Sequence record: NC_061448.1
Strand: one strand, 5' to 3'
DNA: 64,000 bases
The translations under genes and the position numbers were made by a program. Shown piece after piece: positions 37,463 to 57,595 of the stretch; the first letter of the stretch is position 1; the number at the start of each line of letters is the position of its first letter. A model generated the notes under the pieces. It saw only the letters and a list, made by a program, of their open reading frames with translations. It was not told where the DNA came from and did not search any database.

Positions 37463-38539
37463 TTACATAGCAGTATACCCTATTTCAGATAACACCGCGT
37501 TAAGTTCCTTCCGAGCACTAACCCGCAAGGACTTTTTAATTCCCGAAGCCTTGAGATACTCCTTAAGGCCATCGCGTGGATCAATATCCGCGAGCGTTAA
37601 CTCGCTAACATCGACTGTATCTATATTATCGAGATCGACGCGTTTATTCGTGGAATTTATTTGGGAAATGTTCGGTACGCGAGTACGGATATCTGCCGGT
37701 ATCGACACGGTGTCCTTAACAATAACACGGTATCTAATCGCAGGGTTTACTTCCAGACGTGACCAGTCTTTCTGATTCTCTATTGCAACTGTCTCTAACC
37801 TGAATCCGGGTTTGCTGTCAATGAACTTCTGTTGAACAATCAGCTCGCCCTTCTTGTAGAACGCACGAATGTGAAGGAACCCTTTCGGCAGTGCTTCCCC
37901 AAACGTTTTCTGGTACGGTGAACCACAGTAAGTGAAGCGCTTTGCCTCAAGCACCTGATACAGGTGAATGTGACCACTGATTGTATAATCGCGTGGGTCA
38001 ACTTTAATATCTTTCTTCGCTTTAAGCGGGCGACCGTTATCACCCAGCGCACCGATAGCTTCTACGTGGCAGAAGTTCAGGCACGGCTTCTTATGCTTAA
38101 TGCTTTCTTTCGCAGGGTGCGGCAGGAAGTTAACGACAACACCATCAATCTCTACCTGCTCAGGTCTGAGGTAGATGTGCAGCGACTTGAGGAAGTCCCA
38201 TTCACAGAACGTCTTAATCAAGTCCATGCTGGTGGAGGTCATGTCTGCCCAGTCGTGGTTGCCACCGCAGTACCACGTTTCAACAACGCCCTCGTACTTG
38301 AGGAAGAACTGGAGCAGCTTGCGCTTAGTCTCGTCTTCCATCTTAAACTTATCGGTGATATCGCCTGGAACGATAACGTGACGAATCCCGTGCTCAACTG
38401 CATACTGATAAATGCGGTCAATTGTTTCAAGCTGACGATCAACGTGATCAGTAGGGAAGTGATTCGACAGGCCTTCGAAGTGCCAGTCAGAGGTCGTAAT
38501 CGCTTCTAAGATCTCAGATACTTTTTTCTTTTTCATCAC
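37463..38539 (-). CDS. sbcD: SbcD/Mre11-like metallophosphoesterase nuclease
   Basis: TSDWH, PGDITD, GGNHD, NFCH, SGHIH, YCGSPYQKTFGE. Confidence 0.9.
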   Translation of the reverse strand: MMKKKKVSEILEAITTSDWHFEGLSNHFPTDHVDRQLETIDRIYQYAVEHGIRHVIVPGDITDKFKMEDETKRKLLQFFLKYEGVVETWYCGGNHDWADMTSTSMDLIKTFCEWDFLKSLHIYLRPEQVEIDGVVVNFLPHPAKESIKHKKPCLNFCHVEAIGALGDNGRPLKAKKDIKVDPRDYTISGHIHLYQVLEAKRFTYCGSPYQKTFGEALPKGFLHIRAFYKKGELIVQQKFIDSKPGFRLETVAIENQKDWSRLEVNPAIRYRVIVKDTVSIPADIRTRVPNISQINSTNKRVDLDNIDTVDVSELTLADIDPRDGLKEYLKASGIKKSLRVSARKELNAVLSEIGYTAM

Positions 38540-54910: not shown

Positions 54911-56200
54911 TCACTTCTTCTTTTTCTTTTTCTTCTTCTCTTTGGGTTCGTCGTCTTCTTCATCGTCGTTACCCAAATCAACAACGAGCTTACCGCTGTA
55001 GATGTTCGCCATCACTTCGGTAATGCCTGTCTCCAACATAATGTCAGCAGGTACCGAAGTCGAGTTGAATGCGACTTCTGCATCAGCCAGAGCTTTCTGC
55101 AAATACACCAGACTCACCAGATTGACTTTGATGTTGTCCTTCTTGACCATGTTCATGAACATCTTGAGGCCAGCAGACTGCCACTTGTTCGTTTCGGCGT
55201 AATGCCCCAGCACACCGTGAATGATCCAACGTGCTTTCGCTACGATTGCACGAGGGTTATTCGCTTCACGCAGGAACTGAATCACACCAATCAGATCCAT
55301 CGAGAGATAAGCGCCAATCATCTGAACTGCTTTCGCTTCCATGTCGATCTCTGGATCAGCAGCAGCGAGTTCGGCAACGAGGTTCTTATCGAAGTCTTCA
55401 CCGCCACGCACAGAAGCGTAGATGTTTTGCAGCATGGTGATTGCACCACGCATCTGACCACCAGCGTACTCTGCTACCTGATGCAATGCAGATTCGGCTT
55501 TCTCACGCGCCTTGTCTTTCTTCGGCAGAATATCAAGCTGACCACTGATTTCAATCAGGCGCTTATGAATCACGTCAGTCGCAATCGGTCGGATTGGCAG
55601 TTGCGTCATACGACTGATCATCGTGCCTTTCATCTTCTCAGGGTTCGTCGTTACGAAGATGAAGACTACGTGCGCTGGTGGCTGTTCAGTAATCTTGAGC
55701 AGCTTGGATTCAGCAGCACTGGACATGAGGTGTGATTCATCGAAGATAAACACACGACGCTTGAACATCGGACTAAGCGGTGCTGAGTCAACAATCTTCT
55801 GGCTGCCGTCCACTTTACCGGACTCACCGCCCATGTCGTGCTCTTGCTCGTCAGGGTGTGCGCCACGGTCGTGCATCTCACACGAACGACACTTGCCACA
55901 GGCAGAGAACGAATCACAGTTAATGTACTTCGCTACCAGACGTGCGAACGTTGTTTTGCCAGAACCGAGGTGGCCAGTGATGATCATCGTTGATGGAATC
56001 GTTTTCGACTTCTGCCAACCTTTCATGATCTTCACGATGTGGTCTTGACCAACGTAGTCTTCAATACGCTTCGGTCGGAATTGATCTGCAAAGTTAACAG
56101 TGGTCAACTCAACAGACTCAGAAGAACCGCCTTTCTTCTTCGATGGTTTGTCATCACCGAAGGAACGCGCTTTCTTCTTTTTCTTTTCTTCTTTCGCCAT
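54911..56200 (-). CDS. dnaX: Clamp-loader ATPase, DNA Pol III gamma/tau (DnaX)-like
   Basis: RPKRIEDYVGQDHI, GHLGSGKTT, C...CGKCRSC zinc module, IFDESH, SRM (SRC-like), GQMRGA. Confidence 0.88.
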   Translation of the reverse strand: MAKEEKKKKKARSFGDDKPSKKKGGSSESVELTTVNFADQFRPKRIEDYVGQDHIVKIMKGWQKSKTIPSTMIITGHLGSGKTTFARLVAKYINCDSFSACGKCRSCEMHDRGAHPDEQEHDMGGESGKVDGSQKIVDSAPLSPMFKRRVFIFDESHLMSSAAESKLLKITEQPPAHVVFIFVTTNPEKMKGTMISRMTQLPIRPIATDVIHKRLIEISGQLDILPKKDKAREKAESALHQVAEYAGGQMRGAITMLQNIYASVRGGEDFDKNLVAELAAADPEIDMEAKAVQMIGAYLSMDLIGVIQFLREANNPRAIVAKARWIIHGVLGHYAETNKWQSAGLKMFMNMVKKDNIKVNLVSLVYLQKALADAEVAFNSTSVPADIMLETGITEVMANIYSGKLVVDLGNDDEEDDEPKEKKKKKKKK

Positions 56201-56238
56201 TTTACTTTCGCCCTATAGTTTTGATGCGTTACATCAGG

Positions 56239-56247
56239 TATTTACAG
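56239..56247 (-). promoter_or_regulatory. CTGTAAATA motif upstream of dnaX
   Basis: Exact copy following a terminator. Confidence 0.7.
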
Positions 56248-56256
56248 TATTTAGAC

Positions 56257-56292
56257 AAAAAGAAAGGACCACATCCAAACTGGAGGGTCCTT
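56257..56292 (-). terminator. Probable terminator
   Basis: AAGGACCCTCCAG...GATGTGGTCCTT followed by TCTTTTT on the minus strand. Confidence 0.55.
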
Positions 56293-56339
56293 AGTTAATA
56301 CAAAGTGAATGATAACGCATCGGCAGTGGGCGCTGACGA

Positions 56340-56537
56340 TTAGGCAAAGCACATCTCCCAGCGTGGTACAACGCGGAAGAACTGCTTAAAGTTGGACGGC
56401 GGATTATTCTTGATTGACTCAAGTTTCTGTTCCACAACGTCATAATCTTTTATGCCACTCTCAACAGTGTGAGTGGTGAACGTACCGTCAGCCTGAATCA
56501 AGTCGGCGACAACACGGTAGCTTGGTTTACGAAGCAT
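56340..56537 (-). CDS. Hypothetical protein (65 aa)
   Basis: AGGAG SD; CTGTAAACA variant upstream. Confidence 0.6.
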   Translation of the reverse strand: MLRKPSYRVVADLIQADGTFTTHTVESGIKDYDVVEQKLESIKNNPPSNFKQFFRVVPRWEMCFA

Positions 56538-56630
56538 CTATTCTCCTGTGCTAAAATTTCTCGTTCTTCTGAATTATGTTTACAGTTTACTGCGAGTAGT
56601 CACACAAGAATAAAGTCAGATAAATCTTAA

Positions 56631-56929
56631 ACTCCAATAGGCTCTCAGAGAAAACATATTGGAGTCCACCCTCGCCAGATGACGGTCTAGCCAGGGCTTT
56701 CTCCCCGTGTCTTTCGAATGCACCGACACGGTAGCGCTTGCGGTCTTACGCCCTCTGCGGCAGCGAACGTTTCGGCAGGTAGCGGAGTTCGCAGCCTAGA
56801 GCAGCCGCTTTCGGCCATAGCGATAACGCGGTGTTACGCTTGGCCTAGGGTGACTCAGGGCCGAGTCTGTACAAAAAAAAAAAAGAGTTCGGCCTATCCC
56901 CAAATTCGGCAAAAGAAACAGGCCGAACT
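56631..56929. other. Structured non-coding element (candidate ncRNA, attenuator or origin)
   Basis: At least seven inverted-repeat helices and an A12/T12 run in a ~470-nt gene-free gap (see findings). Confidence 0.5.
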
Positions 56930-57007
56930 AAACACTCAGCGCAAACTCCTTATGCACTGTTTTGTACTGTTACAAATTAGAAACATTCCGAAATAATCAG
57001 ACAATTC

Positions 57008-57595
57008 TTAGTTCAACATTGGACGCAGTTGTTTTAAGAAATGTTGCTTATCGAACGACGTAATTCGGTACGGATGATCGATATGTTCGTTCCATCCTTT
57101 GGTGAACAGCATCACGTTACGAGGCAGCACCAGTTGTTCTCCGACGCGAGTGAACTTGTCACGCACCGCAGTGACAGGATTGTCGTCAACAAGAATCCAA
57201 GTGCCCTCACCGTACTTCTCATTCAGGTAAGCAATCTTGTCAGGGTGTTGGCGACTGTCCAGAACGTCGATGTGATCGAACAACGACAGGTGCTTCTCCA
57301 GAACCTTACGCGTGTTGCGTTCACCTTTCGCATGATAACCGCGATGCGTACAAATGCCGACGCTGAATCCTTCACGCACCAACATCGCTACAGTCTGAAT
57401 GAAGTACGGACGCATGTTAGCATCCAGCATGAAGCGTCCGTCTTCCAGCATGTCAACGAAAGGTTGCTTGCCGTTCTCTGGAGTGATGTACGTGTCAAGG
57501 CCAGGGTGGATTCCCCAGTTCATCAGATGACACAGCATGAAGTTATGCGTATCAAACGCCGTGTCGTCCATGTCGAAGAAAATATGTTTGATCAT
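57008..57595 (-). CDS. HAD-superfamily 5'(3')-deoxyribonucleotidase-like phosphatase
   Basis: IFFDMDDT, ICTHR, DKIAY, LVDDNP. Confidence 0.8.
   Translation of the reverse strand: MIKHIFFDMDDTAFDTHNFMLCHLMNWGIHPGLDTYITPENGKQPFVDMLEDGRFMLDANMRPYFIQTVAMLVREGFSVGICTHRGYHAKGERNTRKVLEKHLSLFDHIDVLDSRQHPDKIAYLNEKYGEGTWILVDDNPVTAVRDKFTRVGEQLVLPRNVMLFTKGWNEHIDHPYRITSFDKQHFLKQLRPMLN

Follow-up and report, generated by a model that had tools for sequence, protein, structure and literature searches.

Large orphan structured non-coding RNAs such as GOLLD and ROOL, which occur in phages and bacteria, came to light through comparative genomics. Phage T4 yields the stable small RNAs species 1 and bands C and D as tRNA-processing products of its tRNA cluster; phi29 pRNA is a component of the packaging motor and engages in intermolecular loop pairing; and the T4 gene 32 leader pseudoknot is a small translational operator at the 5′ end of the mRNA it regulates. 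ToxI consists of 36-nt repeats in tandem, and Pectobacterium phages use ToxI or pseudo-ToxI against ToxIN. Sponges of the CsrB/RsmB type carry about 10–20 GGA motifs, and Erwinia, Dickeya and Yersinia hosts use Rsm/Csr.

Here we describe a locus that resembles each of these in part. The DNA analysed (the window) is a 64,000-nt stretch of NC_061448.1, from the Erwinia jumbo phage pEa_SNUABM_1 (SNUABM_1). Its 470-nt intergenic gap at 56538–57007, flanked by a HAD/PNK-like phosphatase gene on one side and a 65-aa gene plus the clamp loader on the other, houses a folded RNA of ~350 nt, pseudoknot included, on the minus strand. The element spans ~56629–56980 and so runs past 56929, where a first-pass annotation had ended it. 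Its features and neighbours, in minus-strand order, are as follows.

57008..57595, minus strand: upstream neighbour, a 195-aa HAD-type phosphatase like a polynucleotide kinase phosphatase domain (phrog_16292, 1.3e-25; phrog_415 'polynucleotide kinase', 1.1e-14)
56974..56980, minus strand: promoter-like CTAATTT, probably late class, directly 3′ of the phosphatase-like stop codon; the same in 22 aligned relatives
56937..56959, minus strand: hairpin H0, 7-bp stem with Shine-Dalgarno-like GGAG loop UAAGGAGUU; 100% of cells paired, compensatory changes in 3/7 pairs
56886..56929, minus strand: terminator-like hairpin T; 94.7% of cells paired, compensatory changes in 5/12 pairs
56873..56884, minus strand: U12 tract 3′ of T (A12 on the plus strand); length 6 to 12 among close relatives
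56852..56867, minus strand: P1 hairpin, GACUC/GAGUC; stem invariant in 22/22, loop length variable
56813..56845, minus strand: P2 hairpin with invariant apical GUAACACCGCGU, from per-sequence folds
56740..56808, minus strand: P3/P4 domain, outer GCGG/CCGC and inner GCUCU/AGAGC; 94.6% paired versus 25–48% with slid partners, compensatory changes in 8/20
56705..56737, minus strand: H-type pseudoknot of S1 (GCGC/GUGC) and S2, the latter formed by the S1 loop CCGUGUC with downstream GACACGG; A/U-rich linker L3
56701..56704, minus strand: conserved GGAG directly 3′ of the pseudoknot; GGGGAG or GGGGGA in all lineages
56668..56697, minus strand: P6 hairpin, CCGUCA loop inside invariant GACCGUCAUC; P6a 98% paired, P6b compensatory in 5/6
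56629..56667, minus strand: P7 hairpin, arms ACTCCAATA at 56631–39 and 56657–65; 95.9% paired, compensatory in 7/17
56573..56585, minus strand: promoter-like CTGTAAACATAAT of the replication-gene class, for the 65-aa gene and clamp loader
56340..56537, minus strand: downstream neighbour, a 65-aa protein with no function assigned; the clamp loader follows at 54911–56200

GOLLD and ROOL share with our element a multi-helix architecture of several hundred nucleotides, frequent carriage by phages, definition by covariation, invariant loops and the lack of an assigned function; ours is much smaller, is confined to one enterobacterial jumbo phage group and matches nothing in Rfam 15. Like the T4 small RNAs and phi29 pRNA it is phage-encoded, structured and non-coding, with its own predicted phage transcription signals, but we found neither homology to them nor a similar context: ARAGORN called no tRNA or tmRNA gene in the 64-kb window, in keeping with the first-pass remark that the element is not tRNA-shaped. 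The T4 gene 32 operator is likewise a phage pseudoknot in a replication-gene region and potentially read by a protein; here, by contrast, the pseudoknot forms just one part of an RNA with seven helices, and two lineages have a terminator between it and the next gene. ToxI and pseudo-ToxI offer a parallel as pseudoknot RNAs of phages of soft-rot and fire-blight Enterobacterales, with a possible decoy role, and the element contains a GCUACCU string that we presume it has in common with the ToxI repeat. Unlike ToxI, it has no Rfam ToxI match and no tandem repeat of ~34–36 nt, Tandem Repeats Finder returning none over 56500–57050 at a minimum score of 30. The GGAG loop of H0 recalls the GGA/GGAG hairpin loops of CsrB and RsmB, but the element has no excess of GGA, with 5 in 340 nt against 5.78 ± 2.08 in shuffles.

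The minus strand folds better than chance (z = −4.81, none of 200 shuffles being equal) and the plus strand much less so (z = −2.36), which, together with compensatory changes that keep the helices in relatives, bears out the first-pass claim of a real multi-helix element. Three plain MAFFT alignments had 91.6%, 94.6% and 92.3% of cells paired, against 25–49% for slid partners; both sides had changed in 22/39, 8/20 and 8/37 pairs, and in each alignment the covariation score exceeded that of all 500 shuffles. Paired cells contained 190 G-U and 17 A-C combinations, which shows the fold under selection to be that of RNA from the minus strand, not of the DNA; this disposes of the DNA secondary-structure signal that had been among the options first offered. 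The same survey had described a G+C-rich core between A+T-rich flanks, and we measured G+C fractions of 0.56–0.63 and 0.31–0.41, respectively.

Most of the helices first read from the letters are real. Those that stood are P7 as given above, CCGTGTC at 56705–11/56725–31 (now S2), GCGAAC at 56763–68/56787–92 (P4), the nested GCCA/TGGC, AGCG/CGCT and TAAC/GTTA pairings (P2), GACTC at 56852–56/56863–67 (P1) and, beside A12 at 56873–84, the 10-bp hairpin at 56886–95/56920–29. Two of the nine are not conserved. AGGGC/GCCCT at 56693–97/56750–54 is not kept in relatives, and its bases belong to P6 and P3; CCTAG/CTAGG at 56795–99/56845–49 lacks one arm in phB78, SNU30, SNU22 and SNU28, and the other arm reads TTTGC in the Alexandra clade. 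Overlooked in that list were the S1 × S2 pseudoknot, H0 at 56937–59 and the long-range P3.

The ~240-nt core comprises P1, P2, the P3/P4 domain, the H-type pseudoknot, P6 and P7. P1 is neutral on pairing because its stem is invariant in all 22 sequences. P2 is predicted in every lineage despite different stems (for example, AGCG/CGCU versus AGUG/CACU); MAFFT misregisters the Snuvirus and Y3 rows there, and support for P2 comes from the per-sequence folds. In the P3/P4 domain a bulged GUAAGA and a GCUACC that caps the long, variable P4 are invariant, while P4 itself is 99% paired with both sides changed in 5/8 pairs. Both pseudoknot stems are complementary in 12 representatives of nine lineages, through eight sequence versions of S1 and eight of S2; the tool count on the MAFFT alignment gave 90.9% paired cells for S1 and 85.6% for S2. 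At the base of P7, ACUCCAA/UUGGAGU does not vary in any lineage, and the stem above it covaries. In fHe-Yen9-02, Salmondvirus JA29 and contig L052 the GGAG segment after the pseudoknot could instead pair, over 10–11 contiguous bp, with the 5′ strand of P7 that contains CUCC, the paired sequences differing among these three lineages, whereas in the remaining lineages, Alexandravirus included, this alternative pairing is only 4 bp long. A further closing helix between the U tract and GAGAAA was predicted by single-sequence folding; both of its sides are invariant, and the U tract is missing in JA29 and L052.

Covarying stems thus carry a set of invariant loops and junctions: GUAACACCGCGU, GCUACC, GUAAGAC, GGGGAG, GACCGUCAUC and ACUCCAA/UUGGAGU. 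The motif ACCGY occurs four times against 0.64 expected (13 of 2000 shuffles reached as many), by eye in the loops of P2 and P6 and on the P3 strand next to the GUAAGA bulge, with the fourth copy mostly within S2. Across the phage genome, sequences complementary to the conserved loops were no commoner than chance, bar one 13-nt match to the P2 loop.

Homologues sit at the same position in ~55 phage records that span seven genera of jumbo phages infecting Erwinia, Dickeya and Yersinia, one copy per genome; syntenic carriers are Alexandravirus, Snuvirus, Sasquatchvirus, Yoloswagvirus, Rivsvirus, Salmondvirus and Yersinia phage fHe-Yen9-02, and two more are IMG/VR contigs. The phosphatase gene accompanies the RNA in every lineage. 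The 65-aa gene is less faithful: tblastn found no homologue in Salmondvirus records, though the RNA is present there, and none is annotated within the JA29 gap. Two loop-based patterns run on IMG/VR and one run on JGI metagenomes recovered only close Alexandravirus relatives and chance matches (L028, L037 and L039), one of the two IMG/VR patterns being mis-spaced and unable to match SNUABM_1 itself, and BLAST with the JA29 and fHe-Yen9-02 versions gave matches confined to their own genera. A loose pattern hit at least 120 loci of unrelated taxa among bacterial genomes, where the best of the 80 listed (L072–L151) scored 27.5 bits with model R1, no better than the pattern itself buys, which makes this a limited test of bacterial genomes. 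Phages PaBG and Lu11 have no gap ahead of the clamp loader and no R1 match in their whole genomes.

None of the 4227 covariance models of Rfam 15 reached its gathering score anywhere in the window, and E-value mode (up to 10) over 56500–57050 returned two chance-level matches, ctRNA_pT181 at 20 bits (56 needed, E 5.7) and SNORD107 at 16 bits (50 needed, E 5). Nor does the gap hold an open reading frame conserved across the 22 relatives: the longest moves between strands and frames and measures anything from 41 to 92 aa, even at 95% identity, and frame-breaking indels of 1 and 2 nt are common. In 46 records of close relatives nothing is annotated under the element, while the records of three more distant relatives wrongly assign parts of it to small proteins; the short hypothetical ORFs marked in the corresponding gap are Yoloswag gp203 and gp204, fHe-Yen9-02 106c and SNUABM_5 00214. 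Of the options first proposed, an uncharacterised phage ncRNA agrees best with covariation in seven genera, the lack of an ORF and the lack of an Rfam match, which support the element as a previously undescribed non-coding RNA family.

To place the RNA in its transcriptional setting, we considered the short motifs around it. The TAATTT noted in the first-pass annotation is part of the recurrent CTAATTT at 56974–80; this 7-mer was found in 11 upstream regions where 1.0 would be expected, 16 of its 22 genomic copies lie 29–74 nt ahead of a ribosome-binding site and start codon, and the genes it precedes include those of the tail sheath and endolysin. Its enrichment and position suggest that CTAATTT is a promoter, and since the class is found before tail sheath and endolysin genes the RNA is probably expressed late. 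A second motif, CTGTAAA, is present in 23 upstream regions (2.9 expected), ahead of genes for DNA polymerase, sliding clamp, ligase, SSB and primase; the Lu11 record labels the same motif before its clamp loader a putative middle/late promoter, and in every lineage the gene downstream of the RNA has a promoter-like copy to itself. No sigma-70 promoter (TTGACA, 16–18-nt spacer, TATAAT, at least 9/12 matches) was found on the minus strand over 56200–57200, and the candidate promoter of the RNA is the phage-specific motif. Phages of this group encode their own sigma-70-like factor (PMC7412058). Relatives in four metatranscriptome runs gave gene-spanning contigs over the whole region, one of 18.6 kb, that carry no strand, end or level information.

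Hairpin T has the form of an intrinsic terminator, with a stem of at least 12 bp, one C and then U12 (56873–56929, minus strand), as the first reading of hairpin and U12 had proposed; a simple terminator scan missed it because its loop exceeds the scan maximum of 8 nt. Compensatory pairs (UUCGG/CCGAA versus UCUGG/CCAGA in Y3, for example) and 94.7% paired cells indicate that selection maintains the stem, and the U tract varies in length as would be expected of a terminator tail and of homopolymer slippage. Seven of nine lineages (Alexandravirus, Snuvirus, Sasquatchvirus, Yoloswagvirus, Rivsvirus, L071 and fHe-Yen9-02) have T on the 5′ side of the core, and a U tract of 5–12 follows it in all seven. 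JA29 and L052 keep the core but have neither T nor a U-run ahead of it. L052 shows, in this order, CTAATTT, the core, a strong terminator, the CTGTAAA motif and the next gene; JA29 likewise has a strong terminator 3′ of the core, and a separate promoter-like motif serves its next gene. In Alexandravirus the sole good terminator is the one upstream of the core, and no strong one lies between P7 and the next gene. A hairpin with a GGAG or GGA loop was seen by eye at the H0 position in Yoloswag, SNUABM_5, fHe-Yen9-02 and L052. We rejected a small ORF behind the GGAG of H0, there being no conserved start codon at usable spacing by eye in the alignment of 22.

We consider it about an even bet (roughly 0.5) that the element is a stand-alone phage ncRNA, probably late and of a new family, whose conserved loops let it act in trans, possibly with a GGAG/CUCC switch. 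Transcription would start from CTAATTT just behind the phosphatase gene, on the minus strand and probably late, giving a transcript whose 5′ end is H0, with a loop that would mimic a Shine-Dalgarno sequence. T and its U tract would come next and be read through into the ~240-nt core with P1, P2, the three-way P3/P4 domain, pseudoknot, P6 and P7. Because stems vary while loop and junction sequences stay fixed, we infer that the folded RNA serves in trans as a scaffold or decoy, displaying fixed loops to a protein or RNA partner. The GGAG beside the pseudoknot and the P7 3′ strand would compete for the CUCC of the P7 5′ strand, a competition that could make the 3′ domain a two-state switch. Counting against this reading, seven of nine lineages place a good terminator-like hairpin between presumed promoter and core; the main product might be just a ~100-nt RNA of H0 and T, and the core would then need read-through or processing.

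More tentatively, the element may represent a new functional RNA class confined to enterobacterial jumbo phages of the PaBG group, expressed late, in which the pseudoknotted core detects a protein or small ligand and thereby flips the GGAG/CUCC switch. If so, it could serve to turn off or redirect earlier gene expression, to tie up a host factor or defence nuclease, or to work as a ribozyme with the phosphatase.

A doubtful but possible alternative is a cis-acting leader, in which the element would be the long 5′ UTR of late CTAATTT transcripts that continue into the 65-aa gene and clamp-loader operon. It would govern stability, processing or read-through, with GGAG/CUCC pairing as a riboswitch-like or protein-operated platform and P7 plus UUUAAGAUUU as a weak terminator. 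The element is co-oriented with the replication genes and directly upstream of them in all lineages, its 3′ end could form mutually exclusive helices, its pseudoknot adjoins a GGAG as in translational operators and in riboswitch or attenuator leaders with pseudoknot aptamers, and Alexandravirus has no strong terminator from P7 to the next gene. Its domain is, however, far larger than a pseudoknot riboswitch and matches no Rfam riboswitch model, and by eye no AUG, GUG or UUG follows the conserved GGAG at ribosome-binding-site spacing. A riboswitch or attenuator sensor is transcribed before its terminator, whereas here the strong terminator precedes or is separated from the structured domain; in seven lineages T is made ahead of the core, so its outcome cannot depend on the core, and with terminators following the core in JA29 and L052 the attenuator or antitermination leader initially suggested is unlikely for the multi-helix core. 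Alexandravirus's one good terminator precedes the core, P7 has no U tract behind it in Yoloswag, SNUABM_5, JA29 and L052, the downstream gene has its own CTGTAAA motif everywhere, and in Yoloswag and SNUABM_5 an additional ORF of ~110 aa separates the RNA from that motif. Linkage to the clamp loader cannot separate action in cis from action in trans because these genomes are collinear.

It is unlikely that the gap holds two adjacent things, a functional ~100-nt small RNA (H0, T and U tail) and a core that is a read-through or processed by-product. Motif, hairpin and U-tailed terminator do form a classic bacterial small RNA layout, with covariation in both H0 and T, but the core is conserved equally and covaries far more, so it demands a function of its own, and JA29 and L052 retain it without T or a U-run upstream.

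A catalytic or repair-linked role seems improbable, whether as a self-cleaving or self-processing ribozyme or as a substrate or guide of the HAD/PNK-like phosphatase in the manner of the Y-RNA-like RNAs beside RNA-repair genes. The compact pseudoknotted core with its invariant unpaired nucleotides would suit it, as would strict synteny with the polynucleotide-kinase-phosphatase-like gene in all lineages; yet such synteny, common to the whole collinear genome block, is weak evidence, no Rfam ribozyme or Y RNA matched at E up to 10, and RNA ligase, Ro and RtcB homologues were not seen among the neighbours tested.

We regard as highly improbable an origin-associated primer or R-loop RNA comparable to ColE1 RNA II or the T4 oriF/oriG transcripts, which could draw on the element's place amid the replication gene cluster, between promoters of that class. 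The cumulative GC-skew turning point lies at ~190–195 kb, at least 10 kb away, the locus shows neither repeats nor iterons, nor any AT-rich unwinding element other than ordinary promoter regions, and a primer RNA needs no pseudoknot and loops conserved at the RNA level.

That there is no RNA here, and that the gap holds a DNA signal in the form of a cruciform or a site bound by protein, a transcript of the plus strand, or small ORFs like the ones marked in the records of some relatives and the 92-aa plus-strand ORF of SNUABM_1, is already contradicted by the G-U excess, the much weaker plus-strand fold and ORFs conserved in neither strand, frame nor length and broken by 1- and 2-nt indels.

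Support for the fold, with seven core helices and a pseudoknot across seven genera, equals that of many Rfam families, and the element could be deposited as a new family; the analysis also yields, as a by-product, two candidate classes of promoter in this group of phages. Jumbo phages that infect fire-blight and soft-rot pathogens are under development for biocontrol; their genes are mostly unknown and their RNA genes ignored. With a late-class motif inside a replication cluster, a hairpin that may mimic a Shine-Dalgarno sequence, invariant ACCGY loops and a possible switch, this RNA offers a test case for how large lytic phages use structured RNA, for which very few examples have a known mechanism.

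The 470-nt gap of Erwinia phage pEa_SNUABM_1 (MZ443776, Alexandravirus, 266.9 kb; record base 180400 corresponds to window base 56400) carries, with a probability of about 0.9, a real, conserved and structured RNA on the minus strand, to which all neighbouring genes also belong. The gap bears no annotation in this record or in 46 phage records with close relatives.

The gap, its neighbours and the RNA fold, listed 5' to 3' on the minus strand (window positions)
57008-57595, minus: upstream neighbour, a 195-aa HAD-type phosphatase resembling the phosphatase part of polynucleotide kinase
56538-57007: gap holding the RNA, 470 nt
56937-56959, minus: hairpin H0, loop UAAGGAGUU
56886-56929, minus: hairpin T, followed by U12
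56852-56867, minus: helix P1
56813-56845, minus: helix P2, capped by the invariant GUAACACCGCGU
56740-56808, minus: helices P3/P4, with a bulged invariant GUAAGA and an invariant GCUACC near the P4 tip
56705-56737, minus: H-type pseudoknot
56701-56704, minus: GGAG
56668-56697, minus: helix P6, loop CCGUCA
56629-56667, minus: helix P7, invariant base ACUCCAA/UUGGAGU
56340-56537, minus: downstream neighbour, a 65-aa protein without known function
54911-56200, minus: clamp loader, next after the 65-aa gene

Re-reading the sequence placed seven of the first-pass annotation's nine helices at the coordinates given, along with its A12 run and TAATTT motif, and computed G+C fractions of 0.56-0.63 agree with its G+C-rich core between A+T-rich flanks; in the alignment, helices AGGGC/GCCCT and CCTAG/CTAGG are lost in relatives. 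The minus-strand RNA folds at -125.2 kcal/mol, much better than shuffled sequence (z = -4.81, matched by 0 of 200 shuffles); with z = -2.36, the plus strand does not stand out. Independent single-sequence folds of ten relatives gave the same architecture, and further diverged members are also predicted to form multi-helix folds. The homopolymer after T (56873-56884) is 12 nt long here and in SNUABM_39, 11 in AD1 and 9 in SNUABM_2, and most relatives have 6; this variation in length could tune termination, or may simply result from slippage or sequencing uncertainty.

Gap identity is 70-100% across the 46 records, which comprise Alexandravirus, Snuvirus-like phages and Sasquatchvirus Y3, and conservation within Alexandravirus is about that of the flanking genes. 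A search anchored on the flanking order of phosphatase, gap, optional 65-aa gene and clamp loader brought up diverged versions in Yoloswag, Rivsvirus SNUABM_5, Yersinia phage fHe-Yen9-02 and Salmondvirus JA29, JA11, JA13 and JA33; these score 52-81 bits against R1, a covariance model of the RNA 3' half, which finds one copy per genome and added two members from IMG/VR contigs, L071 and L052. PaBG (L207) and Lu11 (L208), members of the phage group that infect Pseudomonas, have no R1 match, and ahead of their clamp loader both the phosphatase and the RNA gap are missing; in PaBG a DUF2829 gene occupies that position. Bacterial genomes, screened to a limited extent, yielded no convincing member among the matches listed. 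Public runs place relatives of the phage in wastewater, straw and food-fermentation samples. Six runs with near-identical sequence are recorded as RNA, five of them metatranscriptomes (assembled contigs); in one run an 18.6-kb contig spans the whole stretch, which bears on phage occurrence, not on a transcript.

Pairing is retained through compensatory sequence change, as counted on plain MAFFT alignments that were not fitted to the structure.

Base pairing in MAFFT alignments and with slid partners
Pseudoknot, P6 and P7 (25 sequences, 7 genera): 91.6% of cells paired; slid 32-49%; 22 of 39 pairs changed on both sides
P3/P4: 94.6% of cells paired; slid 25-48%; 8 of 20 pairs changed on both sides
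H0, T, P1 and P2: 92.3% of cells paired; slid 26-41%; 8 of 37 pairs changed on both sides

For the pseudoknot, P6 and P7, 0 of 500 shuffles reached the observed values; such counts are not probabilities, the sequences being related, and it is the slid-partner control together with the number of independent lineages that makes chance an unreasonable explanation. In 12 representatives the pseudoknot stems are fully complementary, with eight different sequences per stem (among them CCGUGUC/GACACGG, CCCUC/GAGGG, CCCGC/GCGGG, CCCAC/GUGGG and CCUCU/AGAGG), and the crossing linker, A/U-rich in all of them, measures 7-9 nt. In H0 100% of cells are paired and three of seven pairs show compensatory change, and T has such change in 5 of 12; the P1 stem is invariant and thus uninformative on pairing. 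MAFFT puts P2 out of register in two genera, but the helix forms in every lineage, with differing stem sequences.

Paired cells contain 190 G-U and 17 A-C combinations, and therefore selection has acted on the minus-strand RNA, which runs in the direction of the neighbouring genes; a plus-strand RNA, or the DNA secondary-structure signal that had been suggested earlier, acting as a cruciform, would give the reverse bias or none. Nor is the gap protein-coding: from relative to relative its longest ORF lies on differing strands and in differing frames and measures 41-92 aa, the pEa_SNUABM_1 version, 92 aa on the plus strand, is shortened to 44 aa in 95%-identical phages, and indels of 1 and 2 nt are frequent. 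Small hypothetical proteins annotated in the Yoloswag, fHe-Yen9-02 and SNUABM_5 gaps mostly overlie the RNA, and mis-annotation is the probable explanation, except for an extra ORF of ~110-120 aa that looks real, between P7 and CTGTAAA in Yoloswag (L040, 616-939, minus) and SNUABM_5 (L042, 694-1053, minus), membrane-like by eye and absent from Alexandravirus.

Apart from RBS and terminator words, a k-mer survey upstream of 218 RBS-preceded ORFs of the genome picked out two motifs as enriched, CTAATTT (11 observed, 1.0 expected) and CTGTAAA (23 observed, 2.9 expected). Both typically lie 30-50 nt ahead of a start codon, in many cases directly behind a terminator.

Examples of both motifs in the window
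13848, 32921, 36533, 41298, 47323 and 49140, minus: CTAATTT
12763, 18602, 22028, 31192, 60260 and 62445, minus: CTGTAAA

They are candidates for two promoter classes. CTGTAAA precedes genes for DNA polymerase, sliding clamp, ligase, SSB, primase, methyltransferase, HNH endonuclease and the 65-aa protein; CTAATTT precedes those for tail sheath, endolysin and large proteins without known function. Because of this enrichment, position and gene content, because the Lu11 record labels a CTGTAAATA motif before the clamp loader a putative middle/late promoter, and because phages of this group carry a sigma-70-like factor of their own (PMC7412058), we infer that CTAATTT is a late-class promoter element. 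At the RNA it is invariant, 7 nt after the phosphatase stop codon and ~15 nt before H0. In L052 CTAATTT is followed by the core RNA, a strong terminator, CTGTAAA and the next gene, and JA29 likewise has a terminator after the core; as read from the sequence, this arrangement is that of an RNA gene in its own right. The remaining seven lineages have the terminator-like hairpin T after H0 and before the core, which is the main weakness of a single-RNA model.

Across lineages the stems drift and the loops are fixed, as is typical of RNAs that a protein or a second RNA recognises by their sequence. Every lineage retains GUAAGAC (GUAAGC in fHe-Yen9-02), GGGGAG and ACUCCAA/UUGGAGU, and ACCGY occurs four times (0.64 expected): by eye, one copy is in the P2 loop, one next to the GUAAGA bulge of P3, one in the P6 loop and the fourth mostly within pseudoknot stem S2. 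Because loops are fixed while stems drift, we prefer a reading in which the RNA would act in trans, recognised sequence-specifically by a protein or RNA partner; an independent trans-acting RNA of this kind has roughly even odds. That it is instead a cis-acting leader we consider unlikely, and all remaining readings are minor. The pseudoknot next to GGAG and an alternative pairing are riboswitch-like features, but a classical attenuator, as suggested at first pass, is disfavoured by the order in which the elements lie. In fHe-Yen9-02, JA29 and L052 the segment after the pseudoknot pairs with the P7 5' strand over 10-11 contiguous bp, differing in sequence in each and mutually exclusive with P7, a possible conformational switch; the remaining lineages have only GGAG:CUCC (4 bp) available, able to stack on P6, and a third GGAGU lies in the H0 loop. 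A CsrB-like sponge, a ToxI-like repeat array and an origin-like element were rejected, since GGA is not enriched, tandem repeats were not found and GC skew is against it, respectively.

The invariant P2 loop (UAACACCGCGUUA) has a 13-nt perfect complement at 37488-37500 (minus), in the 3' end of an SbcD-like nuclease gene (37463-38539); the 10-nt core of the complement, ACGCGGUGUU, is shared by SNUABM_3, Alexandra, SNUABM_22, Y3 and SNUABM_7. Such a match would rarely be expected by chance in the genome; the site is coding and the gene conserved anyway, and the match is only a lead towards a trans target. In Erwinia phage pEp_SNUABM_52 (L022) the P2-loop sequence GTAACACCGC (10 nt) is tandemly duplicated relative to near-identical Y3, giving two copies of the invariant motif.

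No Rfam family matches the RNA, as the search proposed at first pass established, and its closest resemblance is to orphan structured non-coding RNAs from comparative genomics. Phage-encoded structured non-coding RNAs have precedents as a kind of thing; as a family of sequence and structure, this one is new.
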